This document shows positions 6,880-64,000 of a DNA stretch of 64,000 nucleotides, piece after piece (position 1 is the first letter of the stretch; every line of letters begins with the position of its first letter). The DNA lies in NCBI RefSeq assembly GCF_964204645.1, contig NC_134036.1, positions 3,286,001 through 3,350,000 of the forward strand, written 5' to 3'. The position numbers and the translations under genes are program-made. The notes under the pieces are model-generated. The model saw only the letters and a program-made list of their open reading frames with translations, made no database searches and had not been told where the DNA came from. Source of the stretch: Tubulanus polymorphus (Eukaryota > Animalia > Nemertea).

Positions 6880-9275
6880 CAGGCTCTTAAGTAGCTTGAT
6901 ATTCAAACGATATTCTCCATTAGATATCCAATCATCCCATATTGAAAGATTTTTTGATACGTGTGTACATTCCAAAGCATAGGTTAGCAAATTTTAAAGG
7001 ATATATTTAACCAATTTTTTGGTAACTGTTTCGTTAAAGAGTTACTTCACAAACTGTCAGTGGTGCAGAAAACGCATCATTTGAATTTGTGTCTTACTTT
7101 CTTACTTACTTTCTTCGCACAATTCAATTGTGTCGCTTTGAAAATTCAATTGTCGACCAATAGAAGTAGGGCAGACATCCCATTCAATATATTCTATAGG
7201 TGCATGTATGTCACCAGAGGTATTGTTATATAGCAATTGTGAAGCCTCTCCCAAGGACTATTCATTGTCATTCTTTGAATCTTTGATTTTCAGAGAATCT
7301 TTGATCCATATTTTTCAAAACCCGTATAAGGACTTCGAGCCTAATATACTTGCAGTGCTGGCCATTGTGATTGTAAAGACACTGGATATATGGACACTGG
7401 ATTCTTTAGTTTCAACTCTACCCTCAGCAGTTGACCATGCTGACTTTCCAGTGTCTGTTATGCCGCCTGTTTCTGGCCCAGGTTTAACTTGTATCTGGTT
7501 TTAAGGATTACTGAAAACCTTTAAAAAATAAAAACCTTGTCGGTTAATACTTTGTTGTTGAACCTGTCACAGCTCCATGTCTAACCCATATTCCTTCGAA
7601 CTGCTCCCACGCTGCCCTCTGCCTCGCTTCGGTGCGTCCTGTCGATTGCGCACCCTCTACGGGGCCGAATACAGATCTACTTCATTCTTACTACTCGCGC
7701 TCTCGACTATCTCGCGGATAACCCGCCCCTCCTCACCGCGCAAACGCAACACACGGACCCGCTTCCTCTTTTGGAACGACGTTATTCTCATCTGCAAGAA
7801 AAAAAAACAACGTTGTCAGATAATGAGTAAAAAAGATTAGAAATAACATTACCAAATTATATATGAACTGGTTTAAAGCAGTTATCACTTTAAAGGGGTG
7901 GTTCATTTTCAAGTTCTTTCAATTTAGTGACTGTCCTATCTAAGGAACTTGCTTTTTTGATCCGATTTCACAAGAATTAATTCAGCCGTGAAACACTAGA
8001 TATCAGACAATCCATTCAACAAAAAATGATTGTCCATGATTTTAGTGAATGTTTTGAGGGCTCCTGATTACAGAATAACTTTTTACACCCTCTCAAGCAA
8101 CAATTTACAAATTATTAAAAGGTCGAGTGGTCACTTCAAGTGTTTTGGCGAGTATAAACTAATATTTTTCACAGCCTTTGCCTTTGAAGATATTCGGTAG
8201 ATTTTAACGCTTACCTAGCGCATATCCCCCGGGAAGGTTCTCCCTTGCAGACGGACGAAGAACCTTGAAGCCGCCGGGTGCGGCTGCCTTGGTTTACGCG
8301 GCTGTGCTGCTCCTGGTGCTGCTCCAGGTGGTACTCCAGGTGGTCCTGGTGGTTGGGCCGAGGAGGCCGCCGAAAGAGCTTAACGAGACAGACCACCTCG
8401 GCTGACGGACCACCCTCACAATTATCCAAAAATGGAGATACTGTAAAATAAAGAAAAATAACATCTAAAAATAACATGAAATTTTTTCCCAAAATCTTTC
8501 ATTAGATATATTGTCCCTTCTATTTGACTGTTGAATTTGATAGGGTGTCCCTTTCTTTACCCACCTGTAGCAAAACAGGGATTTGATTTTGAAATCATGA
8601 AGTACAGATATAATCTGATAAATATTCTAGTTTTTAACAGTAGTGGAAAAAACGTTTCAAGATCAGTGGTCAACTAATCCTTCAAAAACCTCATTGTGGA
8701 ATCAATTGTAGAATTTAGAATTAATCTCTTCATTTTAGTGACTGCCTTATGTTAGGAACTTGCGTTTTGATCCGATTTAAAAACATTGATAAGTTAAATA
8801 GATAATTGATAAAATACTTGTGATTGTTGTAAACAATATTGATAAAACCTCTCTGGGTGAGGTTTTGTATCTAATACTTGGAATAAAGAATTTCATCAGT
8901 CCGTATAAGAGTTAGATATATTTGTGTTCTGCTCTGCACCATCTCTCCTCCCGCTCCCTCGGTGTCTCCATTCATGATTTAATTCTACTATGCGTCGTCT
9001 ACCGCGTGGTCCTCATCGCTTAATACTTTGATGTTAAACCTGTGTCTGGCCCAAGTCTAACCTGTATCTGGTTTGTAAGGATGTCCGTAAATCTTGGAAA
9101 GTATAAAAACCTTGTTGGTTATTACTATGATTCAAATCTAAGAAGTTTAATGTCTTGGCTCCGGGATTAACTTATATGAAACTGACCCCTACAGGTGATT
9201 ATCACTGATAATAATCGGTCGTAGAAGAATTGAATATAAACCAGAAGAAAATTATAAATATTGATAAATACTTAC

Positions 9276-9438
9276 GGAATTCAAACAAGAATTCCCGCAT
9301 AAACTCGATCGAAGTAGAGCCCTCTCTTATTGTATTCCTTAATACAATCGGGGAACAACTTCGAGTGCCCTGCGCCGTCGACTGGTAGCCCAGTGGGACT
9401 TCTCTCTTGTAATTGTACTGTCATCATCGCTCGAAGCG
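9276..9438 (-). pseudogene. Fused exon 2+3 variant lacking the intervening intron
   Basis: Same acceptor as exon 2 and same donor as exon 3, but GCGATGATGA joins directly to CAGTACAATTACAAG. This module produces the repeated MFYLHQLF... ORF. Confidence 0.6.
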
Positions 9439-9807
9439 CTGAAAATATAGAAATCAATTGAAATTCATTATTAGTAATCAATATAAACAACTGGTGTAAA
9501 TAAAACACTTGAAAATCAGATCAATTCAGGTAAAATTTACGGACGCCAAACGTGGCGATCTGCGCGTCGGTGGCGCCACATTCTTTGTTTTTTTAGCTTT
9601 TGGCATCTAAAAAGAAAAAAAAAGAAAAACTCCAGCCTCTTTACCATACTCGAATATGCTCCAGGTAAAACATCTATCTGGTTTAAAGGATTACCTTACA
9701 TCTACCTTGTGGAATCAATTGTAAGGAAAATCCAGACTACCCACATCCTCCTTCGCGTCATTTGAGATTGTTGTAAACAATATTGATAAAACCTCAATAT
9801 TCAATGT

Positions 9808-10544
9808 TTTATTGTATTTGAATGTATTTATAAAAGCTGATTGGTTACTGTGGCTACAGTCTTATCAAAGTTGAATAGACAAATAAAATACAATATGATA
9901 CATTTTTATGATACTCTCTGCATTGATCGAAATGATGGAAAAAGATTCAATACAAGAATTCAAATCTTAACTTGATCTATCATTAAGCCTTGAAAACCTA
10001 AAGTTCTATTCGAATCCACCAACAGATGGGAGGACACTCGGCCATTGTTGACCATTGCCACGGCGTCAAACTCTGAACCAGCACCTGCGGTTGGGTGCGC
10101 CAACTTTGCATTGAGAGTGCTGGTACTGACTCGAGGTGATTGCGGAGGAAATGGTACATCTGGCCTCACGGGGTAGGAGGATCAAAAATATCCTCCATCG
10201 GTGGTAACTCAGGAGAGTCCGGACAACCCTCATCCTCGGGAATCTCGCCCTCCTGCCGCTGCCGCTCCAACTCCTCTCCTCCATCTCGCCTCCATCTGTC
10301 GAGCTCCGCAAGCTCTTGCCGCCGAATTTCAGCCTCCACTCTCGCACACTCTATCTCCTGCTCCAGTATCCTCTTCGGTGCGTCCTGTTCATGGCGCGCC
10401 CTCTGCGGGGTCGAATACAGATCCACTTCGTTCTCGCTACTCGCTACTCGCGCTCTACAGCATCTCGCGGATTACCCGCCCTTCCTCACCATGCAAACGC
10501 AATACATGGACCCGCTTCCTCTTCTGAAAGGAAGTAATCCTCAT
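9808..10544 (-). pseudogene. Array gene, terminal exon 5 with 3' region (representative copy; others start at 7791, 12823, ~16513, ~18738, ~61065)
   Basis: Acceptor ttttttcttgcAG, then MRITSFQKRKRVHVLRLHGEEGRVIREML* (IVE instead of ML* in the 7791 and 61065 copies), then ...VDLYSTPQRARHEQDAPKRILEQEIECARVEAEIRRQELAELDRWRR...PPMEDIFDPPTP* (stop 10166-10168). Minus-strand AATAAA at 9808-9813. Confidence 0.65.
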
Positions 10545-11105: not shown

Positions 11106-11171
11106 CTGCCAGAAAAAAACGTCCTCTTCCCTGTTGCTTTGTAAACAATATTGATAAAACCTCTCTAGGTG

Positions 11172-11362: not shown

Positions 11363-13245
11363 GGTTAATGTCTTGGCTCCGGGATAAACCTATATGAAAC
11401 TGACCCCTACAGGTGATTATCGATGATAATAATCGGTCGTAGGATAGAATATAAAACAGAAGAAAATTATAAATATTGATAAATACTTACGGAAGCCCTC
11501 TCTTATTGTATCCCATAATCAATCTGGGAACAACTTGGAGTGACCGGCACCGTCGACTGGTAGCCCAGGGGAGGCTTCCCTCTTGTAATTGTACTGTAAA
11601 ATAGGAAGGACTAAAATAGGAAGGACATTCAATAAGAATACGAATAGCAATTATTTCAATAATTTGTGAAAAATTTATTTACACTTAATAATCATCATCG
11701 CTCGAAGCGCTGAAAATATAGAAATCAATTGAAATTCATTATTAGTAATCAATATAAACAACTGGTGTAAATAAAACACTTGAAAATCAGATCAATTCAG
11801 GTAAAACTTACGGACGCCAAACGTGGCGATCTGCGCGTCGGCAGCGCCACATGCCGCGTTTTCTTTTTAGCTTTTGGCATCTAAAAGGAAAAAAAAAAGA
11901 AACTCCAGCCTGTTTACCATATACTCGAATATGCTCCAGGTAAAACATCTATCTGGTTTAAAGGATTACCTTACACCTTCCTAGTGGAATCAATTGTAAG
12001 GAAAATCCAGACTACCCACATCCTCCTTCGAGATCTCACTTGAGATTGTTGTAAACAATATTGATAAAACCTCAATATTCAATGTTTTATTGTATTTGAA
12101 TGTATTTATAAAAGCTGATTGGTTACCGTGGCTACAGTCTTATCAAAGTTGAATAGACAAATAAAATACAATATGATACATTTTTATGATACTCTCTGCA
12201 TTGTTCGAAATGATGGAAAAAGATTCGATACAAGAATTCAAATCTTAACTTGATCTACAGTCAGCCTTGAAGATCTAAAGCTCTATTCAAATCCACCAAC
12301 AAATGGGCACATGTATGTGACCGGTGGACAGTCGACCATTGTTGACCATTGCCACGGCTTCAAACTCTGAACCAGCACCTGCGGTTGGGTGCGCCAACTT
12401 TGCATTGAGAGTGCTGGTACTGACTCGAGGTGATTGCGGAGGAAATGGTACATCTGGCCTCACGGGGTAGGAGGATCAAAAATATCCTCCATCGGTGGTA
12501 ACTCAGAGAGTCCGGACGACCTCATCCTCAGGAATCTCGCCCTCCTGCCGCTGCCGCTCCAAATCCTCTCGCCTCCATCTGTCGAGCTCCGCAAGCTCCC
12601 GTCGCCGAATTTCGATCTCCACTCTTGCACGCTCTATCTCCTGCTCCAGTCTCCTCTTCGGTGCGTCCTGTTCATGGCGCGCCCTCTGCGGGGTCGAATA
12701 CAGATCCACTTCGTTCTCGCTACTACTCGCGCTCTACAGCATCTCGCGGATTACCCGCCCTTCGTCACCATGCAAACGCAATACATGGACCCGCTTCCTC
12801 TTTTGGAAGGAAGTAATCCTCATCTGCAAGAAAAAAACAACGTCAGATAAAGAGTAAAAAAGATTAGAGATAACATTACAAAATCATAATTATATATGAA
12901 CTGGTTTAAAGCAGTTATCATTTTAAAGGGGTGGTTCCTTTTCAAGTTCTTTCAATTTAGTGACTGTCCTATCTTGCTTTTTGATCCGATTTCATAAGAA
13001 TTAATTCAGCCGTGAAACACTAGATATCAGACAATCCATTCAACAAAAAATGATTGTCCACGATTTTAGTGAATGTTTTGAGGGCTCCTGATTACAGAAT
13101 AACTTTTTACACCCTCTCAAGCAACAATTTACCAATTATTATTGCTAAAAGGTCGAGTGGTCACTTCGAGTGTTTTGGCGAGGCAATGACTAATATTTTT
13201 CGCAGCCTTTGCCTTTGAAGATATTCGGTAGATTTTAACGCTTAC

Positions 13246-13471
13246 CTCGTGCATATCCCCCGGAAAGGTTCTCCCTTGCAGACGGACGGAGAACCTTGAA
13301 GCCGCCGGGTGCGGCTGCCTTGGTTCACGTGGCTGTGCTGCTCCTGGTGCTGCTCCAGGTGGTGCTCCAGGTGGTCCTGGTGGTTGGGCCGAGGAGGCCG
13401 CCGAAAGAGCTTAACAAGACAGACCACCTCGGCTGACGGACCACCCTCACAATTATCCAAAAATGGAGATA
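13246..13471 (-). pseudogene. Array gene, exon 4 (representative copy; others at 8215-8440, ~19160, ~24530, ~30450, ~35820, ~41735, ~47075, ~49435, ~54500)
   Basis: Acceptor tttctttattttacAG, donor GAG|GTAAGC, 226 nt and GC-rich. Phase-1 entry reads LSPFLDNCEGGPSAEVVCLVKLFRR; one frameshift is needed to reach PPGPPGAPPGAAPGAAQPREPRQPHPAASRFSVRLQGRTFPGDMHE with phase-0 exit. Confidence 0.65.
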
Positions 13472-15139
13472 CTGTAAAATAAAGAAAAATAACATCTAAA
13501 AATAACAAATGTTTCATTAGATATATTGTCCCTTCTATTTGACTGTTGAATTTGATAGGGTGTCCCTTCCTTTACCCACCTGTAGCAAAACAGGGATTTG
13601 ATTTTGAAATCATGAAGTACAGATATAATCTGATAAATATTCTAGTTTTTAACAGTAGTGGAAAAAACGTTTCAAGATCAGTGGTCAACTAATCCTTCAA
13701 AAATCTCATTGTGGAATCAATTGTAGAATTTAGAATTAATCTCTTCATTTTAGTGACTGCCTTATGTTAGGAACTTGCGTTTTGATCCGATTTAAATACA
13801 TTGGTAAGTTAAATAGATAATTAATAGAATACTTGAGATTTACTTAGACCTTGCATAAGTAAAAACCTTGTTGGTTAATACTATGTTTCGAATCTAAGAA
13901 CATTAAAAAACCTGTCTCTGGCCCAGGTTTAACTTGTTTCTGCTTTTAAGGATGACTGAAAACCCTGAAAAAGTAAAAACCTCGTCAAATAATACTATGA
14001 TGGTTGATTGTAAGCTGATTGGTTACTGTGGTTACATTCTGAACTGCTGCATCATCGTCACTTCTTCACTTCTACTCGCGCTCTACACCATCTCGCGAAT
14101 AACTCACCCCTCCTGACCGCACAAACACGTGGCATGGACATGCTTCCTCTTCTGGAACGAGGTTAATTTTTAACTGCAAGAAAAAAACGTCCTCTTCCCT
14201 GTTGCTTTGTAAACAATATTAATAAAACCTCTCTAGGTGACAGGTTTAACTTGTATCTGGTTTTAAGGATGACTGAAAACCTTGAAAAATTAAAAACCTC
14301 ATCGCTTAATACTTTGATGTTAACTGGTTTCTAAGGATGTCCGTAAATCTTGGAAAGTAAAAAAACCTTGTCGGTTATTACTATGATTCGAATCTAAGAA
14401 GGTTAATGTCTTGGCTCCGGGATAAACCTATATGAAACTGACCCCTACAGGTGATTATCGATGATAATAATTTGTTGTAGAATTGAATATAAAACAGAAG
14501 AAAATTATAAATATTGATAAATACTTAAGGAATTCAAACAAGAATTCCCGCATAAACTCGATCGAAGTAGAGCCCTCTCTTATTGTATCCCTTAATACAA
14601 TCGGGGAACAACTTCGAGTGCCCTGCGCCGTCGACTGGTAGCCCAGTGGGACTTCTCTCTTGTAATTGTACTGTCATCATCGCTCGAAGCGCTGAAAACA
14701 TAGAAATCAATTGAAATTCATTATTAGTAATCAATATAAACAACTGGTGTAAATAAAACACTTGAAAATCAGATCAATTCAGGTATAACTTACGGACGCC
14801 AAACGTGGCGATCTGCACGTCGGCAGCGCCACATTCTTGGTTTTTTTTTTTTAGCTTTTGGCATCTAAAAAGTAAAAACCTCATCGCTTAATACTTTGAT
14901 GTAAACCTGGTTCTGGCCCAGGTCTAACCTGTATCTGGTTTCTAAGGATGTCCGTAAATCTTGAAAAGTAAAAAAACCTTGTTGGTTATTACTATGATTC
15001 AAATCTAAGAAGGTTACTGTCTTGGCTCCGGGATAAACCTATATGAAACTGACCCCTACAGGTGATTATCGATGATAATAATCGGTCGTAGAATAGAATA
15101 TAAAACAGAAGAAAATTATAAATATTGATTAATACTTAC

Positions 15140-15281
15140 GGAATTCAAACAAGAATTCCCGCATAACCTCGACCGAAGTAGAGCCCTCTCTTATTGCATC
15201 CCGTAATCAATCTGGGAACAACTTGGAGTGACCGGTACCGTCGACTGGTACCCCAGGGGGGGCTTCCCTCTTGTAATTGTA
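15140..15281 (-). pseudogene. Array gene, exon 3 (representative copy): YNYKREAPPGVPVDGTGHSKLFPD*LRDAIREGSTSVEVMREFLFEF
   Basis: Acceptor cctattttacAG, donor TTCC|GTAAGT, 142 nt, phase 0 in and phase 1 out, one internal TGA. Confidence 0.65.
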
Positions 15282-15357
15282 CTGTAAAATAGGAAGGACA
15301 TTCAATAAGAATACGAATAGCAATTATTTCAATAATTTGTAAAAAATTTATTTACAC

Positions 15358-15396
15358 TTCATAATCATCATCGCTTGTCGATTGTTCTGGAGAGCG
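15358..15396 (-). pseudogene. Array gene, exon 2 (representative copy): RSPEQSTSDDDYE
   Basis: Acceptor ttttcAG, 39 nt = 13 codons in frame with exon 1, weak donor GAA|GTGTAA. Flanking introns are 102 and 76 nt. Confidence 0.55.
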
Positions 15397-15498
15397 CTGA
15401 AAACATAAAAATCAATTGAAATTCATTATTAGTAATCAATATAAACAACTGGTGTAAATAAAACACTTGAAAATCAGATCAATTCAGGTAAAACTTAC

Positions 15499-15567
15499 GG
15501 ACGCCAAACGTGGCGATCTGCGCGTCGGCAGCGCCACATGCCTCGTTTTCTTTTTAGCTTTTGGCAT
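15499..15567 (-). pseudogene. Array gene, exon 1 (representative copy): MPKAKKKTRHVALPTRRSPRLAS
   Basis: Long pyrimidine tract + AG directly before ATG, 69 nt = 23 codons, donor TCC|GTAAGT, phase 0. Another copy at 9541-9606 has 22 codons. Confidence 0.7.
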
Positions 15568-18500
15568 CTAAAAGGAAAAAAAAAAGAAAAACTCCAGCCT
15601 GTTTACCATACTCGAATATGCTCCAGGTAAAACATCTATCTGGTTTAAAGGATTACCTTACACCTTCCTTGTGGAATCAATTGTAAGGAAAATCCAGACT
15701 ACCCACATCCTCCTTCGAGATCTCACTTGAGATTGTTGTAAACAATATTGATAAAACCTCAATATTCAATGTTTTATTGTATTTGAATGTATTTATAAAA
15801 GCTGATTGGTTACTGTGGCTACAGTCTTATCAAAGTTGAATAGACAAATAGAATACAATATGATACATTTTTATGATACTCTCTGCATTGATCGAAATGA
15901 TGGAAAAAGATTCAATACAAGAATTCAAATCTAAACTTGATCTATCATTAAGCCTTGAAAATCTAAAGTTCTATTCGAATCCACCAACAGATGGGCACAT
16001 GTATGTGACCGGTGGACACTCGGCCATTGTTGACCATTGCCACGGCGTCAAACTCTGAACCAGCACCTGCGGTTGGGTGCGCCAACTTTGCATTGAGAGT
16101 GCTGGTACTGACTCGAGGTGATTGCGGAGGAAATGGTACATCTGGCCTCACGGGGTAGGAGGATAAAAAATATCCTCCATCGGTGGTAACTCAGGAGAGT
16201 CCGGACAACCCTCATCCTCGGGAATCTCGCCCTCCTGCCGCTGCTGCTCCAACTCCTCTCGCCTCCATCTGTCGAGCTCCGCAAGCTCTCGCCGCCGAAT
16301 TTCAGCCTCCACTCTCGCACACTATATCTCCTGCTCCAGTATCCTGTTCGGTGCGTCCTGTTCATGGCGCGCCCTCTGCGGGGTCGAATACAGATCCACT
16401 TCGTTCTCGTTACTACTCGCGCTCTACAGCATCTCGCGGATTACCCGCCATTCCTCACCGCGCAAACACAACACACGGACCCGCTTCCTCTTCTGAAAAG
16501 AGGTAATCCTCATCTGCAAGAAAAAACTGACGTGAGATAAAGAGTAAAAAAGATTAGAAATAATATTACAAAATCATAATTATATATGAAATTGTTTAAA
16601 GCAGTTATCATTTAAAAGGGCTGATTCCTTTTCAAGGCCTTTCAATTAAGTGACTGCCTTATCTTAGGAACTTGCTTTTTGATCCGATTTAAATACATTG
16701 ATAATTTAAATAGATAATTAATAGAATACTTGAGATTTACTTAGACCTCGCATAAGTAAAAACCTTGTTGGTTAATACTATGTTTTGAATCTAAGAACAT
16801 TAAAAAACCTGTCTCTGGCCCAGGTTTAACTTGTTTCTGCTTTTAAGGATGACTGAAAACCCTGAAAAAGTAAAAACCTCGTCAAATAATACTATGATGG
16901 TTGATTGTAAGCTGATTGGTTACTGTGGCTACATTCTGAACTGCTGCATCATCGTCACTTCTCCTTCACTTCTACTCGCGCTCTACACTATCTCGCGAAT
17001 AACTCACCCCTCCTGACCGCACAAACACGTGGCATGGACATGCTTCCTCTTCTGGAACGAGGTTATTTTTTAACTGCAAGAAAAAAACGTCCTCTTCCCT
17101 GTTGCTTTGTAAACAATATTAATAAAACCTCTCTAGGTGACAGGTTTAACTTGTATCTGGTTTTAAGGATTACTGAAAACCTTGAAAAAATAAAAACCTC
17201 ATCGCTTAATACTTTGATGTTAAATCTGTGTCTGGCCCAGGTCTAACCTGTATCTGGTTTCTAAGGATGTCCGTAAATCTTGGAAAGTAAAAAAACCTTG
17301 TCGCTTATTACTATGATACGAATCTAAGAAGGTTAATGTCTTGGCTCCGGGATAAACCTATATGAAACTGACCCCTACAGGTGATTATCGATGATAATAA
17401 TCGGTCGTAGAATATAATATAAAACAGAAGAAAATTATAAATATTGATAAATACTTATGGAATTCAAACAAGAATTCCCGCATAAACTCGATCGAAGTAG
17501 AGCCCTCTCTTATTGTATCCCTTAATACAATCGGGGAACAACTTCGACTGCCCTGCGCCGTCGACTGGTAGCCCGGTGGGACTTCTCTCTTGTAATTGTA
17601 CTGTCATCATCGCTCGAAGCGCTGCAAATATAGAAATCAATTGAAATTCATTATTAGTAATCAATATAAACAACTGGTGTAAATAAAACACTTGAAAATC
17701 AGATCAATTCAGGTAAAACTTACAGACGCCAAACGTGGCGATCTGCGCGTCGGTGGCGCCACATTCTTTGTTTTTGTTTTTAGCTTTTGGCATCTAAAAA
17801 GAAAAAAAAAGAAAAACTCCAGCCTGTTTACCATATACTCGAATATACTCCAGGTAAAACATCTATCTGGTTTAAAGGATTACCTTACACCTTCCTTGTG
17901 GAATCAATTGTAAGGAAAATCCAGACTACCCACATCCTCATTCGAGATCTCACTTGAGATTGTTGTAAACAATATTGGTAAAACCTCAATATTCAATGTT
18001 TTATTGTATTTGAATGTATTTATAAAAGCTGATTGGTTATTGTGGCTACAGTCTTATCAAAGTTGAAAAGACAAATAAAATACAATATTATACATTTTTA
18101 TGATACTCTCTGCATTGTTCGAAATGATGGAAAAAGATTCAATACAAGAATTCAAATCTTAACTTGATCTATCATTAAGCCTTGAAAATCTAAAGCTCTA
18201 TTCGAATCCACCAACAGATGGGCACATGTATGTGACCGGTGGACAGTCGACCATTGTTGACCATTGCCACGGCTTCAAACTCTGAACCAGCACCTGCGGT
18301 TGGGTGCGCCAACTTTGCATTGAGAGTGCTGGTACTGACTCGAGGTGATTGCGGAGGAAATGGTACATCTGGCCTCACGGGGTAGGAGGATCAAAAATAT
18401 CCTCCATCGGTGGTAACTCAGAGAGTCCGGACGACCCTCATCCTCAGGAATCTCGCCCTCCTGCCGCTGCCGCTCCAAATCCTCTCGCCTCCATCTGTCG

Positions 18501-21500
18501 AGCTCCGCAAGCTCCCGTCGCCGAATTTCGATCTCCACTCTTGCACGCTCTATCTCCTGCTCCAGTCTCCTCTTCGGTGCGTCCTGTTCATGGCGCGCCC
18601 TCTGCGGGGTCGAATACAGATCCACTTCGTTCTCGCTACTACTCGCGCTCTACAGCATCTCGCGGATTACCCGCCCTTCCTCACCATGCAAACGCAATAC
18701 ATGGACCCGCTTCCTCTTTTGGAAGGAAGTAATCCTCATCTGCAAGAAAAAAACAACGTCAGATAAAGAGTAAAAAAGATTAGAGATAACATTACAAAAT
18801 CATAATTATATATGAACTGGTTTAAAGCAGTTATCATTTTAAAGGGGTGGTTCCTTTTCAAGTTCTTTCAATTTAGTGACTGTCCTATCTTGCTTTTTGA
18901 TCCGATTTCATAAGAATTAATTCAGCCGTGAAACACTAGATATCAGACAATCCATTCAACAAAAAATGATTGTCCACGATTTTAGTGAATGTTTTGAGGG
19001 CTCCTGATTACAGAATAACTTTTTACACCCTCTCAAGCAACAATTTACCAATTATTATTGCTAAAAGGTCGAGTGGTCACTTCGAGTGTTTTGGCGAGGC
19101 AATGACTAATATTTTTCGCAGCCTTTGCCTTTGAAGATATTCGGTAGATTTTAACGCTTACCTCGTGCATATCCCCTGGGAAGGTTCTCCCTTGCAGACG
19201 GACGGAGAACCTTGAAGCCGCCGGGTGCGGCTGCCTTGGTTCGCGCGGCTGTGCTGCTCCTGGTGCTGCTCCAGGTGGTGCTCCAGGTCGTCCTGGTGGT
19301 TGGGCCGAGGAGGCCGCCGAAAGAACTTAACAAGACAGACCACCTCGGCTGACGGACCACCCTCACAATTATCCAAAAATGGAGATACTGTAAAATAAAG
19401 AAACATCTAAAAATAACAAATGTTTCATTAGATATATTGTCCCTTCTATTTGACTGTTGAATTTGATAGGGTGTCCCTTCCTTTACCCACCTGTAGCAAA
19501 ACAGGGATTTGATTTTGAAATCATGAAGTACAGATATAATCTGATAAATATTCTAGTTTTTAACAGTAGTGGAAAAAACGTTTCAAGATCAGTGGTCAAC
19601 TAATCCTTCAAAAATCTCATTGTGGAATCAATTGTAGAATTTAGAATTAATCTCTTCATTTTAGTGACTGCCTTATGTTAGGAACTTGCGTTTTGATCCG
19701 ATTTAAATACATTGGTAAGTTAAATAGATAATTAATAGAATACTTGAGATTTACTTAGACCTTGCATAAGTAAAAACCTTGTTGGTTAATACTATGTTTT
19801 GAATCTAAGAACATTAAAAAACCTGTCTCTGGCCCAGGTTTAACTTGTTTCTGCTTTTAAGGATGACTGAAAACCTTGAAAAAGTAAAAACCTCGTCAAA
19901 TAATACTATGATGGTTGATTGTAAGCTGATTGGTTACTGTGGTTACATTCTGAACTGCTGCATCATCATCACTTCTTCACTTCTACTCGCGCTCTACACC
20001 ATCTCGCGAATAACTCACCCCTCCTGACCATGCAAACACGTGGCATGGACATGCTTCCTCTTCTGAAACGAGGTTATTTTTTAACTGCAAGAAAAAAACG
20101 TCCTCTTCCCTGTTGCTTTGTAAACAATATTGATAAAACCTCTCTAGGTGACCGGTTTAACTTGTATCTGGTTTTAAGGATGACTGAAAACCTTGAAAAA
20201 TTAAAAACCTCATCGCTTAATACTTTGATGTTAACTGGTTTCTAAGGATGTCCGTAAATCTTGGAAAGTAAAAAAACCTTGTCGGTTATTACTATGATTC
20301 GAATCTAAGAAGGTTAATGTCTTGGCTCCGGGATAAACCTATATGAAACTGACCCCTACAGGTGATTATCGATGATAATAATCGGTCGTAGAATAGAATA
20401 TAAAACAGAAGAAAATTATAAATATTGATAAATACTTATGGAATTCAAACAAGAATTCCCGCATAACCTCGATCGAAGTAGAGCCCTCTCTTATTGTATC
20501 CCTTAATACAATCGGGGAACAACTTCGAGTGCCCTGCGCCGTCGACTGGTAGCCCAGTGGGACTTCTCTCTTGTAATTGTACTGTCATCATCGCTCGAAG
20601 CGCTGAAAATATAGAAATCAATTGAAATTCATTATTAGTAATCAATATAAACAACTGGTGTAAATAAAACACTTGAAAATCAGATCAATTCAGGTATAAC
20701 TTACGGACGCCAAACGTGGCGATCTGCGCGTCGGCAGCGCCACATTCTTGGTTTTTTTTTTTAGCTTTTGGCATCTAAAAAGTAAAAACCTCATCGCTTA
20801 ATACTTTGATGTTAAACCTGGTTCTGGCCCAGGTCTAACCTGTATCTGGTTTCTAAGGATGTCCGTAAATCTTGAAAAGTAAAAAACCTTGTTGGTTATT
20901 ACTATGATTCGAATCTAAGAAGGTTAATGTCTTGGCTCCGGGATAAACCTATATGAAACTGACCCCTACAGGTGATTATCGATGATAATAATCGGTAGTA
21001 GAATAGAATATAAAACAGAAGAAAATTATAAATATTGATAAATACTTACGGAATTCAAACCAGAATTCCCGCATAACCTCGACCGAAGTAGAGCCCTCTC
21101 TTATTGTATCCCGTAATCAATCTGGGAACAACTTGGAGTGACCGGTACCCCAGGGGGGGCTTCCCTCTTGTAATTGTACTATAAAATAGGAAGGACATTC
21201 AATAAGAATACGAATAGCAATTATTTCAATAATTTGTAAAAAATTTATTTACACTTCATAATCATCATCGCTTGTCGATTGTTCTGGAGAGCGCTGGAAA
21301 CATAAAAATCAATTGAAATTCATTATTAGTAATCAATATAAACAACTGGTGTAAATAAAACACTTGAAAATCAGATCAATTCAGGTATAACTTACGGACG
21401 CCAAACGTGGCGATCTGCGCGTCGGCAGCGCCACATTCTTCGTTTTCTTTTTAGCTTTTGGCATCTAAAAAGAAAAAAAAAAGAAAAACTCCAGCCTGTT

Positions 21501-24500
21501 TACCATATACTCGAATATACTCCAGGTAAAACATCTATCTGGTTTAAAGGATAACCTTACACCTTCCTTGTGGAATCAATTGTAAGGAAAATCCAGACTA
21601 CCCACATCCTCATTCGAGATCTCACTTGAGATTGTTGTAAACAATATTGATAAAACCTCAATATTCAATGTTTTATTGTATTTGAATGTATTTATAAAAG
21701 CTGATTGGTTACTGTGGCTACAGTCTTATCAAAGTTGAATAGACAAATAAAATACAATATGATACATTTTTATGATACTCTCTGCATTGTTCGAAATGAT
21801 GGAAAAACAACGTGAGATAAAGAGTAAAAAAGATTAGAAATAACATTACAAAATCATAATTATATATGAAATTGTTTAAAGCAGTTATCATTTAAAGGGG
21901 CTGATTCCTTTTCAAGGCCTTTCAATTTAGTGACTGCCTTATCTTAGGAACTTGCTTTTTGATCCGATTCAAATACATTGATAATTTAAATAGATAATTA
22001 ATAGAATACTTGAGATTTACTTAGACCTTGCATAAGTAAAAACCTTGTTGGTTAATACTATGTTTTGAATCTAAGAAGTTTAATAAACCTGTCTCTGGCC
22101 CAGGTTTAACTTGTTTCTGCTTTTAAGGATGACTGAAAACCTTGAAAAAGTAAAAACCTCGTCAAATAATACTGTGATGATTGATTGTAAGCTGATTGGT
22201 TACTGTGGTTACATTCTGAACTGTTGCATCATCGTCACTTCTCCTTCCCTTCTACTCGCGCTCTACACTATCTCGCGAATAACTCACCCCTCCTGACCAT
22301 GCAAACACGTGGCATGGACATGCTTCCTCTTCTGGAAGGAGGTTATTTTTAACTGCCAGAAAAAAACGTCCTCTTCCCTGTTGCTTTGTAAACAATATTG
22401 ATAAAACCTCTCTAGGTGACCGGTTTAACTTGTATCTGGTTTTAAGGATTACTGAAAACCTTGAAAAAGTAAAAACCTCATCGCTTAATACTTTGATGTT
22501 AAACCTGGTTCTGGCCCAGGTCTAACGTGTATCTGGTTTCTAAGGATGTCCGTAAATCTTGAAAAGTAAAAAAACCTTGTTGGTTATTACTATGATTCAA
22601 ATCTAAGAAGGTTAATGTCTTGGCTCCGGGATAAACCTATATGAAACTGACCCCTACAGGTGATTATCGATGATAATAATCGGTCGTAGAATAGAATATA
22701 AAACAGAAGAAAATTATAGATATTGATAAATACTTACGGAATTCAAACAAGAATTCCCGCATAACCTTGACCGAAGTAGAGCCCTCTCTTATTGTATCCC
22801 ATAATCAATCTGGGAACAACTTGGAGTGACCGGCACCGTCGACTGGTAGCCCAGGGGAGGCTTCCCTCTTGTAATTGTACTGTAAAATAGGAAGGACTAA
22901 AATAGGAAGGACATTCAATAAGAATACGAATAGCAATTATTTCAATAATTTGTGAAAAATTTATTTACACTTAATAATCATCATCGCTCGAAGCGCTGAA
23001 AATATAGAAATCAATTGAAATTCATTATTAGTAATCAATATAAACAACTGGTGTAAATAAAACACTTGAAAATCAGATCAATTCAGGTAAAACTTACGGA
23101 CGCCAAACGTGGCGATCTGCGCGTCGGCAGCGCCACATGCCGCGTTTTCTTTTTAGCTTTTGGCATCTAAAAGGAAAAAAAAAAGAAACTCCAGCCTGTT
23201 TACCATATACTCGAATATGCTCCAGGTAAAACATCTATCTGGTTTAAAGGATTACCTTACACCTTCCTAGTGGAATCAATTGTAAGGAAAATCCAGACTA
23301 CCCACATCCTCCTTCGAGATCTCACTTGAGATTGTTGTAAACAATATTGATAAAACCTCAATATTCAATGTTTTATTGTATTTGAATGTATTTATAAAAG
23401 CTGATTGGTTACCGTGGCTACAGTCTTATCAAAGTTGAATAGACAAATAAAATACAATATGATACATTTTTATGATACTCTCTGCATTGTTCGAAATGAT
23501 GGAAAAAGATTCGATACAAGAATTCAAATCTTAACTTGATCTACAGTCAGCCTTGAAGATCTAAAGCTCTATTCAAATCCACCAACAAATGGGCACATGT
23601 ATGTGACCGGTGGACAGTCGACCATTGTTGACCATTGCCACGGCTTCAAACTCTGAACCAGCACCTGCGGTTGGGTGCGCCAACTTTGCATTGAGAGTGC
23701 TGGTACTGACTCGAGGTGATTGCGGAGGAAATGGTACATCTGGCCTCACGGGGTAGGAGGATCAAAAATATCCTCCATCGGTGGTAACTCAGAGAGTCCG
23801 GACGACCTCATCCTCAGGAATCTCGCCCTCCTGCCGCTGCCGCTCCAAATCCTCTCGCCTCCATCTGTCGAGCTCCGCAAGCTCCCGTCGCCGAATTTCG
23901 ATCTCCACTCTTGCACGCTCTATCTCCTGCTCCAGTCTCCTCTTCGGTGCGTCCTGTTCATGGCGCGCCCTCTGCGGGGTCGAATACAGATCCACTTCGT
24001 TCTCGCTACTACTCGCGCTCTACAGCATCTCGCGGATTACCCGCCCTTCGTCACCATGCAAACGCAATACATGGACCCGCTTCCTCTTTTGGAAGGAAGT
24101 AATCCTCATCTGCAAGAAAAAAACAACGTCAGATAAAGAGTAAAAAAGATTAGAGATAACATTACAAAATCATAATTATATATGAACTGGTTTAAAGCAG
24201 TTATCATTTTAAAGGGGTGGTTCCTTTTCAAGTTCTTTCAATTTAGTGACTGTCCTATCTTGCTTTTTGATCCGATTTCATAAGAATTAATTCAGCCGTG
24301 AAACACTAGATATCAGACAATCCATTCAACAAAAAATGATTGTCCACGATTTTAGTGAATGTTTTGAGGGCTCCTGATTACAGAATAACTTTTTACACCC
24401 TCTCAAGCAACAATTTACCAATTATTATTGCTAAAAGGTCGAGTGGTCACTTCGAGTGTTTTGGCGAGGCAATGACTAATATTTTTCGCAGCCTTTGCCT

Positions 24501-45500: not shown

Positions 45501-48500
45501 AATAATTTGTGAAAAATTTATTTACACTTAATAATCATCATCGCTTGTCGATTGTTCTGGAGAGCGCTGGAAACATAAAAATCAATTGAAATTCATTATT
45601 AGTAATCAATATAAACAACTGGTGTAAATAAAACACTTGAAAATCAGATTAATTCAGGTAAAACTTACGGACACCAAACATGGCGATCTGCGCGTCGGCA
45701 GCGCCACATTCTTCGTTTTTTTTTTAGCTTTTGGCATCTAAAAAGAAAAAAAAAGAAACTCCAGCCTGTTTACCATATACTCGAATATACTCCAGGTAAA
45801 ACATCTATCTGGTTTAAAGTATTACCTTACACCTTCCTAGTCGAATCAATTGTAAGGAAAATCCAGACTACCCACATCCTCCATCGAGATCTCACTTGAG
45901 ATTGATGTAAACAATATTGATAAAACCTCAATATTCAATGTTTTATTGTATTTGAATGTATTTATAAAAGCTGATTGGTTACCGTGGCTACAGTCTTATC
46001 AAAGTTGAATAGACAAATAAAATACAATATGATACATTTTTATGATACTCTCTGCATTGTTCGAAATGATGGAAAAAGATTCGATACAAGAATTCAAATC
46101 TTAACTTGATCTACAGTCAGCCTTGAAGATCTAAAGCTCTATTCAAATCCACCAACAAATGGGCACATGTATGTGACCGGTGGACAGTCGACCATTGTTG
46201 ACCATTGCCACGGCTTCAAACTCTGAACCAGCACCTGCGGTTGGGTGCGCCAACTTTGCATTGAGAGTGCTGGTACTGACTCGAGGTGATTGCGGAGGAA
46301 ATGGTACATCTGGCCTCACGGGGTAGGAGGATCAAAAATATCCTCCATCGGTGGTAACTCAGAGAGTCCGGACGACCCTCATCCTCAGGAATCTCGCCCT
46401 CCTGCCGCTGCCGCTCCACAAGCTCCCGTCGCCGAATTTCGATCTCCACTCTTGCACGCTCTATCTCCTGCTCCAGTATCCTGTTCGGTGCGTCCTGTTC
46501 ATGGCGCGCCCTCTGCGGGGTCGAATACAGATCCACTTCGTTCTCGTTACTACTCGCGCTCTACAGCATCTCGCGGATTACCCGCCCTTTCTCACCATGC
46601 AAACGCAATACATGGACCCGCTTCCTCTTTTGGAAGGAAGTAATCCTCATCTGCAAGAAAAAAACAACGTCAGATAAAGAGTAAAAAAGATTAGAGATAA
46701 CATAACAAAATCATAATTATATATGAACTGGTTTAAAGCAGTTATCATTTTAAAGGGGTGGTTCCTTTTCAAACTCTTTCAATTTAGTGACTGTCCTATC
46801 TTGCTTTTTGATCCGATTTCATAAGAATTAATTCAGCCGTGAAACACTAGATATCAGACAATCCATTCAACAAAAAATGATTGTCCACGATTTTAGTGAA
46901 TGTTTTGAGGGCTCCTGATTACAGAATAACTTTTTACACCCTCTCAAGCAACAATTTACCAATTATTATTGCTAAAAGGTCGAGTGGTCACTTCGAGTGT
47001 TTTGGCGAGGCAATGACTAATATTTTTCGCAGCCTTTGCCTTTGAAGATATTCGGTAGATTTTAACGCTTACCTCGTGCATATCCCCCGGAAAGGTTCTC
47101 CCTTGCAGACGGACGGAGAACCTTGAAGCCGCCGGGTGCGGCTGCCTTGGTTCTCGCGGCTGTGCTGCTCCTGGTGCTGCTCCAGTTGGTGCTCCAGGTC
47201 GTCCTGGTGGTTGGGCCGAGGAGGCCGCCGAAAGAGCTTAACAAGACAGACCACCTCGGCTGACGGACCACCCTCAGAATTATCCAAAAATGGAGATACT
47301 GTAAAATAAAGAAAAATAACATCTAAAAATAACAAATGTTTCATTAGATGTATTGTCCCTTCTATTTGACTGTTGAATTTGATAGGGTGTCCCTTTCTTT
47401 ACCCACGAAATCATGAAGTACAGATATAATCTGATAAATATTCTAGTTTTTAACAGTAGTGGAAAAAACGTTTCAAGATCAGTGGTCAACTAATCCTTCA
47501 AAAATCTCATTGTGGAATCAATTGTAGAATTTAGAATTAATCTCTTCATTTTAGTGACTGCCTTATGTTAGGAACTTGCGTTTTGATCCGATTTAAATAC
47601 ATTGATAAGTTAAATAGATAATTGATAAAATATTTGTGATTGTTGTAAACAATATTGATAAAACCTCTCTGGGTGAAGATTTTGTATCTAATACTCGGAA
47701 TAAAGAATTTCAGTTATCAGTTAGCAGTTATCATTTTAAAGGTGTGGTTCCTTTTCAAGTTCTTTCAATTTAGTGACTGTCCTATCTTAGGAACTTGCTT
47801 TTTGATCCGATTTAAATACATTGATAATTTAAATAGATAATTAATAGAATACTTGAGATTTACTTAGACCTCGCATAAGTAAAAACCTTGTTGGTTAACA
47901 CTATGTTTTGAATCTAAGAAGTTTAATAAACCTGTCTCTGGCCCAGGTTTAACTTGTTTCTGGTTTTAAGGATGACTGAAAACCTTGAGAAAAAGTAAAA
48001 ACCTTGTCAAATAATACTGTGATGATTGATTGTAAGCTGATTGGTTACAGTGGTTACATTCTGAACTGTTGCATCATCGTCACTTCTCCTTCACTTCTAT
48101 TCGCGCTCTACACCATCTCGCGAATAACTCACCCCTCCTGACCATGCAAACACGTGGCATGGACATGCTTCCTCTTCTGAAACGAGGTTATTTTTAACTG
48201 CCAGAAAAAAACGTCCTCTTCCCTGTTGCTTTGTTAACAATATTAATAAAACATCTCTAGGTGACAGGTTTAACTTGTATCTGGTTTTAAGGATGACTGA
48301 AAACCTTGAAAAATTAAAAACCTCATCGCTTAATACTTTGATGTTAACTGGTTTCTAAGGATGTCCGTAAATCTTGGAAAGTAAAAAAACCTTGTCGCTT
48401 ATTACTATGATACGAATCTAAGAAGGTTAATGTCTTGGCTCCGGGATAAACCTATATGAAACTGACCCCTACAGGTGATTATCGATGATAATAATCGGTC

Positions 48501-58840: not shown

Positions 58841-61800
58841 TGATGGAAAAACAACGTGAGATAAAGAGTAAAAAAGATTAGAAATAACATTACAAAATCA
58901 TAATTATATATGAAATTGTTTAAAGCAGTTATCATTTAAAGGGGCTGATTCCTTTTCAAGGCCTTTCAATTTAGTGACTGCCTTATCTTAGGAACTTGCT
59001 TCTTGATCCGATTCAAATACATTGATAATTTAAATAGATAATTAATAGAATACTTGAGATTTACTTAGACCTTGCATAAGTAAAAACCTTGTTGGTTAAT
59101 ACTATGTTTTGAATCTAAGAAGTTTAATAAACCTGTCTCTGGCCCAGGTTTAACTTGTTTCTGCTTTTAAGGATGACTGAAAACCTTGAAAAAGTAAAAA
59201 CCTCGTCAAATAATACTATGAATATTGATTGTAAGCTGATTGGTTACTGTGGTTACATTCTGAACTGTTGCATCATCGTCACTTCTCCTTCACTTCTACT
59301 CGCGCTCTACACCATCTCGCGAATAACTCACCCCTCCTGACCACGCAAACACGTAGCATGGACATGCTTCCTCTTCTGGAAAGAGGTTATTTTTAACTGC
59401 CAGAAAAAAAGTCCTCTTCCCTGTTGCTTTGTAAACAATATTGATAAAACCTCTCTAGGTGACCGGTTTAACTTGTATCTGGTTTTAAGGATTACTGAAA
59501 ACCTTGAAAAAGTAAAAACCTCATCGCTTAATACTTTGATGTTAAACCTGGTTCTGGCCCAGGTCTAACGTGTATCTGGTTTCTAAGGATGTCCGTAAAT
59601 CTTGAAAAGTAAAAAAACCTTGTTGGTTTATCCTATGATTCAAATCTAAGAAGGTTAATGTCTTGGCTCCGGGATTAACTTATATGAAACTGACCCCTAC
59701 AGGTGATTATCACTGATAATAATCGGTCATAGAAGAATTGAATATAAACCAGAAGAAAATTATAAATATTGATAAATACTTACGGAATTCAAACAAGAAT
59801 TCCCGCATAAACTCGATCGAAGTAGAGCCCTCTCTTATTGTATCCCTTAATACAATCGGGGAACAACTTAGAGTGCCCTGCGCCGTCGACTGGTTGCCCA
59901 GTGGGACTTCTCTCTTGTAATTGTACTGTCATCATCGCTCGAAGCGCTGAAAATATAGAAATCAATTGAAATTCCTTATTAGTAATCAATATAAACAACT
60001 GGTGTAAATAAAACACTTGAAAATCAGATCAATTCAGGTAAAACTTACGGACACCAAACGTGGCGATCTGCGCGTCGGTGGCGCCACATTTTTGGTTTTT
60101 TTTTTAGCTTTTGGCATCTAAAAAGACAAAAAAAAGAAAAACTCCAGCCTGTTTACCATATACTCGAATATACTCCAGGTAAAACATCTATCTGGTTTAA
60201 AGGATTACCTTACACCTTCCTTGTGGAATCAATTGTAAGGAAAATCCAGACTACCCACATCCTCCTTCGAGATCTCACTTGAGATTGTTGTAAACAATAT
60301 TGGTAAAACCTCAATATTCAATGTTTTATTGTATTTGAATGTATTTATAAAAGCTGATTGGTTATTGTGGCTACAGTCTTATCAAAGTTGAAAAGACAAA
60401 TAAAATACAATATGATACATTTTTATGATACTCTCTGCATTGTTCGAAATGATGGAAAAAGATTCAATACAAGAATTCAAATCTTAACTTGATCTATCAT
60501 TAAGCCTTGAAAATCTAAAGCTCTATTCAAATCCACCAACAGATGGGCACATGTATGTGACCGGTGGACAGTCGACCATTGTTGACCATTGCCACGGCTT
60601 CAAACTCTGAACCAGCACCTGCGGTTGGGTGCGCCAACTTTGCATTGAGAGTGCTGGTACTGACTCGAGGTGATTGCGGAGGAAATGGTACATCTGGCCT
60701 CACGGGGTAGGAGGATAAAAAATATCCTCCATCGGTGGTAACTCAGGAGAGTCCGGACAACCCTCATCCTCCGGAATCTCGCCCTCCTGCCGCTGCCGCT
60801 CCAACTCCTCTCGCCTCCATCTGTCGATCTCCGCAAGCTCCCGCCGCCGAATTTCTGCCTCCACTCTCTCACGCTCTATCTCCTACTCCAGTCTCCTCTT
60901 CTGTGCTTCCTGTTCATGGCGCGCCCTCTGCAGGGTCGAATACAGATCCACTTCGTTCTCGTTACTACTCGCGCTTTCGACTATCTCGCGGATAACCCGC
61001 CCCTCCTCACCGCGCAAACGCAACACACGGACCCGCTTCCTCTTTTGGAACGACGTTATTCTCATCTGCAAGAAAAAAAAACAACGTTGTCAGATAATGA
61101 GTAAAAAAGATTAAAAATAACATTACCAAATTATATATGAACTGGTTTAAAGCAGTTATCATTTTGAAGGGGTGGTTCCTTTTCAAGTTCTTTCAATTTA
61201 GTGACTGTCCTATCTTAGGAACTTGCTTTTTTGATCCGATTTAAATACATTGATAATTTAAATAGATAATTAATAGAATACTTGAGATTTACTTAGACCT
61301 CGCATAAGTAAAAACTTTGTTGGTTAATACTATGTTTTGAATCTAAGAAGTTTAATAAACCTGTCTCTGGCCCAGGTTTAACTTGTTTCTGGTTTAAAGG
61401 ATGACTGAAAACCTTGAAAAAGTAAAAACCTCGTCAAATAATACTATGAATATTGATTGTAAGCTGATTGGTTACTGTGGCTACATTCTGAACCGTTGCA
61501 TCATCGTCACTTCTCCTTCACTTCTACTCGCGCTCTACACCATCTCGCGAATAACTCACCCCTCCTGACCGCACAAACACGTAGCATGGACATGCTTCCT
61601 CTTCTGAAACGAGGTTATTTTTAACTGCCAGAAAAAAAACGTCCTCTTCCCTGTTGCTTTGTAAACAATATTGATAAAACCTCTCTAGGTGACCGGTTTA
61701 ACTTGTATCTGCTTTTAAGGATTACTGAAAACCTTGAAAAAGTAAAAACCTCAACGCTTAATACTTTGATGTTAAACCTGGTTCTGGCCCAGGTCTAACC

Positions 61801-64000
61801 TGTATCTGGTTTCTAAGGATGTCCGTAAATCTTGAAAAGTATAAAAACCTTGTTGGTTATTACTATGATTCAAATCTAAGAAGGTTAATGTCTTGGCTCC
61901 GGGATAAACCTATATGAAACTGACCCCTACAGGTGATTATCGATGATAATAATCGGTCGTAGAATAGAATATAAAACAGAAGAAAATTATAGATATTGAT
62001 AAATACTTACGGAATTCAAACAAGAATTCCCGCATAACCTCGACCGAAGTAGAGCCCTCTCTTATTGTATCCCATAATCAATCTGGGAACAACTTGGAGT
62101 GACCGGCACCGTCGACTGGTACCCCAGGGGAGGCTTCCCTCTTGTAATTGTACTGTAAAATAGGAAGGACATTCAATAAGAATACGAATAGCAATTATTT
62201 CAATAATTTGTGAAAAATTTATTTACACTTAATAATCATCATCGCTGAACGATTGTTCTGGAGAGCGCTGGAAACATAAAAATCAATTGAAATTCATTAT
62301 TAGTAATCAATATAAACAACTGGTGTAAATAAAACACTTGAAAATCAGATCAATTCAGGTAAAACTTACGGACACCAAACGTGGCGATCTGCGCGTCGGT
62401 GGCGCCACATGCCTAGTTTTCTTTTTAGCTTTTGGCATCTAAAAAGAAAAAAAAAAGAAAAACTCCAGCCTGTTTACCATATACTCGAATATACTCCAGG
62501 TAAAACATCTATCTGGTTTAAAGGATTACCTTACACCTTCCTTGTGGAATCAATTGTAAGGAAAGTCCAGACTACCCACATCCTCATTCGAGATCTCACT
62601 TGAGATTGTTGTAAACAATATAGATAAAACCTCAATATTCAATGTTTTATTGTATTTGAATGTATTTATAAAAGCTGATTGGTTACCGTGGCTACAGTCT
62701 TATCAAAGTTGAATAGACAAATAAAATACAATATGATACATTTTTATGATACTCTCTGCATTGTTCGAAATGATGGAAAAACAACGTGAGATAAAGAGTA
62801 AAAAAGATTAGAAATAACATTACAAAATCATAATTATATATGAAATTGTTTAAAGCAGTTATCATTTAAAAGGGCTGATTCCTTTTCAAGGCCTTTCAAT
62901 TTAGTGACTGCCTTATCTTAGGAACTTGCTTTTTGATCCGATTTAAATACATTGATAATTTAAATAGATAATTAATAGAATACTTGAGATTTACTTAGAC
63001 CTTGCATAAGTAAAAACCTTGTTGGTTAATACTGTTTTGAATCTAAGAACATTAAAAAACCTGTCTCTGGCCCAGGTTTAACTTGTTTCTGCTTTTAAGG
63101 ATGACTGAAAACCCTAAAAAAGTAAAAACCTCGTCAAATAATACTATGATGGTTGATTGTAAGCTGATTGGTTACTGTGGTTACATTCTACACTGCTGCA
63201 TCATCGTCACTTCTCCTTCACTTCTCCTTCACTTCTACTCGCGCTCTACACTATCTCGCGAATAACTCACCCCTCCTGACCGCACAAACACGTAGCATGG
63301 ACATGCTTCCTCTTCTGGAAAGAGGTTATTTTTAACTGCCAGAAAAAAACGTCCTCTTCCCTGTTGCTTTGTAAACAATATTAATAAAACCTCTCTAGGT
63401 GACCGGTTTAACTTGTATCTGGTTTTAAGGATTACTGAAAACCTTGACAAAATAAAAACCTCATCGCTTAATACTTTGATGTTAAATCTGTGTCTGGCCC
63501 AGGTCTAACCTGTATCTGGTTTGTAAGGATGTCCGTAAATCTTGAAAAGTAAAAAAACCTTGTTGGTTATTACTATGATTCAAATCTAAGACGGTTAATG
63601 TCTTGGCTCCGGGATAAACCTATATGAAACTGACCCCTACTGGTGATTATCGATGATAATAATTGGTCGTAGAATAGAATATAAAACAGAAGAAAATTAT
63701 AAATATTGATAAATACTTACGGAATTCAAACAAGAATTCCCGTATAAACTCTACCGAAGTAGAGCCCTCTCTTACAGTATCCCTTAATACAATCGGGTAA
63801 CAACTTTGAGTGACCGGTACCCCAGGGGGGACTTCTCTTTTCTGTTTGTAATCATCGTCGCTTGATTGTTCTGGAGAGCACTGAAAACATAGAAATCAAT
63901 TGAAATTCATTATAAGTAATCAATATAAACAACTGTTGTAAACTCAGGAGAGTCCAGACGACCCTCATCCTCGGGAATCTCGCCCTCCTACCGCTGCCGC

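Follow-up and report, generated by a model that had tools for sequence, protein, structure and literature searches.

A probable gene-derived macrosatellite in the nemertean Tubulanus polymorphus

Introduction

Arrays in which a gene has turned into satellite-like DNA are already known from flies and mammals. In Drosophila melanogaster, Stellate and Suppressor of Stellate [Su(Ste)] consist of intron-containing gene copies in head-to-tail arrays, many of them damaged and subject to unequal exchange. Their parent is casein kinase 2 beta-like, their units measure 1 to 3 kb, and the small RNAs of one array silence the other. Gene-bearing macrosatellites of humans include D4Z4 with DUX4, DYZ5 with TSPY, CT47, and RS447 with USP17; their units mostly hold one complete open frame, often intronless, and several are expressed. 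Here, we describe a tandem array of exon-like islands in the nemertean Tubulanus polymorphus (NCBI RefSeq assembly GCF_964204645.1; 268 Mb, 77 contigs, one haplotype). The array lies in a stretch of 64,000 nucleotides that we call the window (contig NC_134036.1, positions 3,286,001 to 3,350,000; G000:C12:3286001-3350000 in our coordinates).

An earlier note, made from the letters of the window alone, had described a satellite-like array of more than 56 kb built from a five-exon gene that it did not recognize. It proposed that either an orphan host gene or an intron-containing accessory gene carried by a mobile element had been amplified into dozens of partial copies. Our analysis leads us to regard the locus as a likely gene-derived macrosatellite, in which a dead lineage-specific host gene was tandemly amplified, probably by unequal crossing-over.

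Results

A homogenized array with higher-order repeats

We compared the window with itself and with its flanks, 10 kb on the left and 30 kb on the right, the latter designated L011 (L011:402 = G000:C12:3350402 = window 64402). Base composition is approximately 38% G+C, with G+C-rich islands within the array. The array that the earlier note placed at 7466-64000 was confirmed by self-comparison and by the flanks, and its real end lies 402 bases beyond the window: higher-order repeat coverage gives 56,937 bp in head-to-tail arrangement. No array sequence was found outside 7466-64402 in the window and these flanks, except for an old relic patch at L011:1370-4400.

Self-comparison reveals a 23.6-kb stretch that recurs 11,286 bp further on. 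This period is the sum of subunits of 5,912 and 5,374 bp, and blocks of 4.2 kb are 97.8% alike at both offsets; shorter repeat offsets of about 3.1 to 3.9 kb are also present. The three full higher-order repeats (Table 1) are 99.96 to 99.97% identical, with copy 3 (34066-45351) differing from copy 2 by five substitutions and no gaps, and units near both array edges are more diverged (92 to 96% alike). The locus therefore has the features of a macrosatellite, namely, units of at least 1 kb placed head to tail, modules that all lie on the minus strand, a homogenized core, and diverged edges.

Exon-like islands and their splice borders

Islands were located by sensitive BLASTN with five reference exons (E1 to E5; Table 1). 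On the minus strand, the search yielded 27 copies of E1, 11 full and 2 partial copies of E2, 28 of E3, 10 of E4, 16 long copies of E5, and about 17 copies of e5', an older, shortened version of the beginning of E5 with 74 to 79% identity to it. The total comes to approximately 110 exon-like islands. The positions match those of the minus-strand islands with AG acceptors and GT donors described before, the borders are canonical in nearly all islands, and introns 1 to 4 are kept. E1 has its AG acceptor in 25 of 27 copies and its GTAAGT donor in 26 of 27, and both borders of E2 are present throughout (AG, 11/11; GT, 11/11). E3 retains AG in 27 of 28 copies and GT in 17 of 27, E4 has AG in all nine full-length matches and GTAAGC in 10 of 10, and the E5 acceptor is AG in every copy (16/16).

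A long pyrimidine tract and AG precede E1, which makes it an exon of internal type; some 90 nt upstream, GTGTAAGGTAAT resembles a donor. An untranslated first exon upstream of E1 is therefore likely. The AATAAA listed in Table 1 is a probable poly(A) signal.

The order exon 1-2-3-4-5 stands as a composite only, as most units contain additional partial cassettes or are without E2 or E4. The first higher-order repeat comprises six E1, two E2, six E3, four e5', two E4, and three E5, and the repeat order is e5' / E1-E2-E3 / E1-E3 / e5' / E4 / E5 / E1-E3 / e5' / E5, continuing after that E5 with E1-E2-E3 / E1-E3 / e5' / E4 / E5 / E1-E3. Where E1-E3 follows directly on E1-E2-E3, it typically has a fused E2'/E3. 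An uninterrupted E1-E3-E4 series occurs in two copies only (9606-7627 and 50833-49435), of which 9606-7627 alone runs on into E5 (truncated, 7791-7627). The E3-E4 interval of these two simplest copies contains a segment (8861-9058 and 50085-50282, both on the minus strand) with 57% protein-level resemblance, interrupted by stops, to residues 33-104 of an open frame in the right flank (L011:617-1336). This segment is an older piece of the unit, and e5' took its place in the core repeats.

In a second type of E1-E3 cassette, here called class B, E2 is fused to E3. The final CAG of intron 2 is still there, and the fusion is therefore a genomic deletion rather than a cDNA-derived join. Together with the presence of introns 1 to 4, this rules out a processed pseudogene (retrocopy).

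Every copy is disabled

Lesions affect each of the modules. Ten of the 27 E1 copies are frameshifted through changes in the length of a poly-A run. Class A E3 exists in two lengths, 142 nt with an in-frame TGA and 129 nt with a frameshift. In class B (for example, 14529-14670), frame 0 of E3 is open, but the fused E2' reads TGATGA in phase, and the donor has mutated to AT or TT in 10 copies. All 27 E1-E3 cassettes are thus disabled by an E1 frameshift, the TGATGA of E2', or the TGA or frameshift of E3. E4 measures 226 nt in every measurable copy, which is at odds with entry in phase 1 and exit in phase 0, so that the single frameshift in exon 4 given by the earlier note would apply to every copy; read without a frameshift, E4 leads to a stop at bases 2-4 of E5. 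This frameshift is not visible as a lesion by comparison of copies because all of them share it. Each of the 16 E5 copies contains a stop or frameshift, with TAG at codon 30 in most and at codon 61 or 64 in others, and the natural C terminus is lost through one-base deletions in six sequence types.

No copy in the array has an intact frame over all exons, and this assembly contains no intact parent gene. The composite peptide of the earlier note can indeed be read across copies, but no single copy encodes it, and the composite hides the TAG in E5. Several lesions are common to many or all copies (E3 TGA, E4 frameshift, and E5 TAG), and much of the amplification therefore copied a gene that was already broken.

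Substitutions retain a trace of coding

We counted substitutions in each frame by comparing codons that carry a single-base variant with the majority codon. E5 has 19 synonymous and 20 nonsynonymous changes in frame 0, against a neutral expectation of 0.27 synonymous (P = 0.0025), and the ratios in the other two frames are 8:32 and 7:33. A coding-type pattern is thus present, in E5 solely in the frame proposed earlier, and the same trend appears in E1 (6:6) and E3 (9:14). Variable sites of E5 fall 13/11/25 on codon positions 1/2/3. G/C sites vary far more than A/T sites, as neutral decay would lead one to expect where the genome is A+T rich; nevertheless, A/T sites still show the third-position excess (7/41 versus 3/108).

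The substitution pattern in the E4 tail fits coding in frames 0 and 1 and not in frame 2. Frame 2 is the only fully open one, and its count of 0 synonymous to 13 nonsynonymous changes rules it out as the coding frame of the tail. Frame 1, that of the earlier reading, gives 6:7, and the comparison favors this reading of E4. Head and tail motifs of E4 also share one frame in the old relic (L011:2959-3105), in agreement with it. Judged by these counts, the exon family was probably once protein coding.

Exons are not better conserved than the introns downstream of them, and there is accordingly no sign of present constraint: substitution-only diversity is 0.054 versus 0.052 for E5, 0.039 versus 0.016 for E4, and 0.060 versus 0.034 for E3 (exon versus downstream intron).

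Exons restricted to one locus and a predicted protein without recognized relatives

Protein and genome searches were run exon by exon. In the 268-Mb assembly, the E5 peptide, the E4 peptide, and 521 nt of E1-E3 DNA match only C12:3,293,000-3,354,000. An intact parent in this genome, which the earlier note had suggested seeking, did not emerge, since exon matches are confined to the array locus and every copy there is broken. The 98-bp element interspersed in the array behaves likewise. Its 31-nt core has 42 matches in the genome, of which 41 lie in the window and 1 lies in an inverted copy in the flank, with no match elsewhere in the assembly, and all 40 scored matches to the whole element fall in C12:3,293,000-3,354,000. 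With all core matches at this locus, a dispersed SINE or MITE (short interspersed or miniature inverted-repeat transposable element) is ruled out.

The protein remained unrecognized, as in the earlier note. Pfam returned no match in nine translated pieces (exon or open frame), array exon pieces included, and the unit contains no known RNA family (Rfam) and no tRNA. HMMER found no credible relative of a 92-residue E5 query among 1.84 billion representative proteins; its sole match, a 1,698-residue immunoglobulin-repeat protein, was judged spurious, consisting of six stretches at 26% identity. Word-indexed searches with the N-terminal 60 residues of E5 and with the E4 open frame were blank, which is weak evidence, as only proteins of similar length are visible to them. 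An ESM Atlas look-up with the 92-residue E5 stretch gave no usable match.

For the same 92-residue stretch, the modeled structure is a single long helix (residues 14-64; predicted local distance difference test score [pLDDT] up to 98) with disordered ends. Given this helix, a basic N terminus, a KRKR motif, acidic patches, and a proline-rich E4, the ancestral protein was probably small, mostly disordered or coiled-coil, and probably nuclear.

An inverted relic and a retrotransposon fragment flank the array

An old inverted copy lies head to head with the array at L011:2334-4400 on the plus strand, with E1-, E2/E3-, E4-, and E5-like exons and splice signals. Its E4- and E5-like exons are about 70 to 77% identical to those of the array, and it carries three to four partial duplications of E4. 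A GTG start, stops in the E2/E3-like exon, and the duplicated E4 pieces rule out this copy as an intact parent.

At the edge of the array, a 239-codon frame on the minus strand (L011:617-1336) consists of an E4-like head followed by part of a reverse transcriptase. Residues 101-239 alone match a retrotransposon, and contig 7 holds the matching frame, which has 1,278 codons and is 95% identical over these residues. The latter belongs to an R2-like non-long terminal repeat (non-LTR) retrotransposon (G000:C7:7864620-7868036, L016), a fragment of which lies at L011:372-1150 on the minus strand; the assignment follows from a 1,139-residue stretch of the contig 7 frame with N-terminal zinc fingers and RVT_1. 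The E4-like part is not of the element, and the fragment was therefore inserted, at the right edge of the array but outside the array itself, into an old E4-like copy. With its match limited to residues 101-239, the fusion frame is ruled out as proof of a mobile-element gene.

The unique left flank holds an EF-hand-like open frame (window 470-925, plus strand), by eye of the calmodulin or myosin light chain type and an ordinary neighbor. A short low-complexity tandem run at window 4358-4634, also in unique flank, translates as repeated SARLG or, from the opposite strand, AEPSR.

RNA evidence and copies absent from the assembly

Four runs of one study contain the stretch, and further runs carry the same species label. 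We compared four public runs (X2, X4, X6, and X7), whose types are unrecorded, as contigs. No contig of X6 or X7, both probable transcriptomes, falls on the stretch, although this does not prove silence. X2 contigs cover 29 of 30 bins, introns included, and the few low-depth contigs of X4 are unspliced, crossing introns 1 and 2 and reaching into intron 4. Reads over the predicted junctions 15499/15396, 15358/15281, and 13246/12823 had been suggested as a check. None of these joints occurs in the contigs of the four runs, where the covering contigs are unspliced, although contigs cannot prove absence.

One 57-nt contig of X4 joins L011:3101 to L011:3942 on the plus strand (G000:C12:3353101-3353942), with 840 nt bounded by GT and AG removed. 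It uses the donor of the relic's E4-like exon and an acceptor within a 98-bp element. This joint looks like a true splice; X4 therefore probably contains RNA, and the inverted relic beside the array may be transcribed.

Contigs of both array-bearing runs include joints and a copy foreign to the assembly, which hint at copy-number variation. X4 record 11 is an unspliced E1-intron-E2-intron-E3 contig, about 94% like window 15279-15502, that ends in 16 bases found nowhere in the assembly. An X2 contig skips 2,809 bp at window 13787/16597, with 12 other letters at the joint, and several X2 loose ends of up to 255 letters were not found in the window or these flanks. The structure of the array probably varies in the X2 sample.

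Table 1. Features of the array and reference copies of its modules (positions in the window unless stated otherwise)
Feature	Position	Strand	Remarks
Whole tandem array	7466..64000, on to G000:C12:3350402	-	Self-BLAST; higher-order repeat coverage of window and flanks
Higher-order repeat copy 1, 11,286 bp, dimer of 5,912- and 5,374-bp subunits	11494..22779	-	
Higher-order repeat copy 2	22780..34065	-	3 substitutions, 0 gaps versus copy 1
Higher-order repeat copy 3 (to 45351), then partial fourth copy	34066..46418	-	Self-BLAST, pairwise comparison
E1 reference copy, 69 nt, MPKAKKKTRHVALPTRRSPRLAS	15499..15567	-	Acceptor AG immediately before ATG; donor GTAAGT
E2 reference copy, 39 nt, RSPEQSTSDDDYE	15358..15396	-	
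E3 reference copy (class A), 142 nt	15140..15281	-	TGA in frame, codon 25
E4 reference copy, 226 nt, head SPFLDNCEGGPSAEVVCLVKLFRRPP in frame 2	13246..13471	-	
E5 reference copy, last exon	12460..12823	-	TAG at codon 30; one-base deletions near end
E5, least damaged copy, 121 codons to PPTP-stop	60700..61065	-	Single TAG at codon 61
E5 stop-free stretch, 92 codons to natural stop	10169..10444	-	Query for library search, ESM Atlas, and fold
e5' (example)	14066..14163	-	Own acceptor; in E3-E4 interval, flanked by two 98-bp elements
AATAAA	15773..15778	-	About 370 nt past E5 stop, about 200 nt ahead of next E1
Terminal older copy, simplest layout: E1, fused E2'/E3, 836-nt interval, E4, truncated E5	7627..9606	-	
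98-bp element, one copy	7466..7566	-	

Discussion

The earlier proposal, that an orphan host gene gave rise to dozens of partial copies by amplification, is supported by the restriction to one locus, the lack of relatives in the searches, and the coding pattern of E5 in a single frame. The ancestor would have been a small, lineage-specific, intron-containing host gene with five coding exons, probably preceded by an untranslated one. Its product of about 280 residues would have been basic and acidic, proline-rich, and equipped with one long charged helix at its end. This gene would have duplicated in tandem at one locus, and the copies may have evolved for some time under purifying selection before they gained shared disabling lesions and underwent internal rearrangement (partial E1-E3 cassettes, fusion of E2 and E3 through deletion, E4 loss, and relics of truncated E5). 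Unequal crossing-over between units would then have amplified this mosaic of dead copies further, the three very young 11.3-kb higher-order repeats being the latest step. We favor unequal crossing-over as the mechanism because the core is homogenized, the edges are diverged, and the subunits are mosaic. Diverged edge units (92 to 96%) and an old inverted copy are the pattern expected when crossing-over homogenizes a core.

Several observations weigh against this scenario. The TAG at codon 30 is common to most E5 copies and to the older e5', and the third-position excess is still 10/8/19 among TAG-bearing copies; this may require gene conversion, or part of the signal may be faster decay of G/C sites, which are 15 to 22% variable against about 3% for A/T sites at positions 1 and 2. 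Base composition also gives rise to long open frames on the opposite strand, so that frame length alone is weak evidence. The two probable transcriptomes are without the array, and the runs that bear it, of unrecorded type, show it unspliced. Finally, X4 record 11 hints at an unassembled allele or an extra array copy, and the assembly represents one haplotype.

Another possibility is that the dead gene left a working locus. Small or long RNA from a unidirectional precursor might control an unassembled intact copy, in a conflict of the Stellate/Su(Ste) type, or the locus might be an ampliconic, lineage-specific birth-and-death family with intact members in other haplotypes. We consider this improbable; if true, it would be a spiralian case, and a very young one, of a functional satellite arising from a gene.

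It is likewise unlikely that the dead copies now form a noncoding RNA locus, giving rise from one strand to a long, possibly spliced RNA or a small-RNA precursor, as Su(Ste) does, with modules kept for RNA processing. The units are co-oriented over 57 kb with largely intact splice signals, but intact two-base signals are expected without selection at 5 to 7% divergence, and the diversity of E5, E4, and E3 is not below that of the introns downstream. At least one splice site seems to be used, to judge from the X4 joint in the inverted copy (E4-like donor to 98-bp element, 840 nt); within the array, however, no joint was seen in the contigs of the four runs.

A living multicopy family, in which some copies, here or in unassembled alleles, still make protein, is slightly more doubtful again. 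Such a family would be ampliconic, fast evolving, and possibly germline expressed. Its product, a proposal to which we give just as little credence, could be a 60-codon E1-E2-E3 frame ending at the E3 TGA, or could use frames other than those of the earlier note. The short E1-E2-E3 frame is intact to its TGA in three higher-order repeat copies, a synonymous excess remains among TAG-bearing E5 copies, the near-identity of the higher-order repeats resembles that of young ampliconic families, and X4 has a copy that is absent from the assembly. Under the splice model, however, 16 of 16 E5 copies and 27 of 27 E1-E3 cassettes contain stops or frameshifts, and ten E3 donors are destroyed. Moreover, no predicted junction appears in any contig, and the two probable transcriptomes hold nothing.

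The notion that the five-exon unit was a passenger or accessory gene of a locally amplified transposon, the second origin offered in the earlier note, is very improbable and largely refuted: a reverse transcriptase fragment does share an open frame with E4-like sequence (L011:617-1336, minus strand), but the E4-like part is foreign to the retrotransposon, which matches residues 101-239 only, no exon or 98-bp element occurs in dispersed copies elsewhere in the genome, and the unit has neither a transposase nor a reverse transcriptase and no Pfam or Rfam match.

As a likely gene-derived macrosatellite, the locus offers a clean, datable example of a protein-coding gene becoming satellite-like DNA. 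An old inverted relic, diverged edges, rearranged subunits, and a higher-order repeat that is three to five mutations old can all be seen at one place. Loci of this type lend themselves to the study of unequal crossing-over, copy-number variation, and what becomes of lineage-specific genes. The present one should be masked in gene prediction, as about 110 islands with good splice signals would produce many false gene models.

Like Stellate and Su(Ste), the nemertean array is an intron-containing coding gene turned into a long array at a single locus. It differs in that its parent has no known relative and its unit is a rearranged mosaic of 5.4, 5.9, and 11.3 kb, and an RNA function is on record for the fly arrays only. 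With the human macrosatellites, it shares kilobase units that hold a gene or its relic, head-to-tail arrangement over tens of kilobases, similar neighbors, and diverged edges. In contrast to those units, the nemertean higher-order repeat consists of 23 whole or partial exons of one multiexon gene, with no intact frame.

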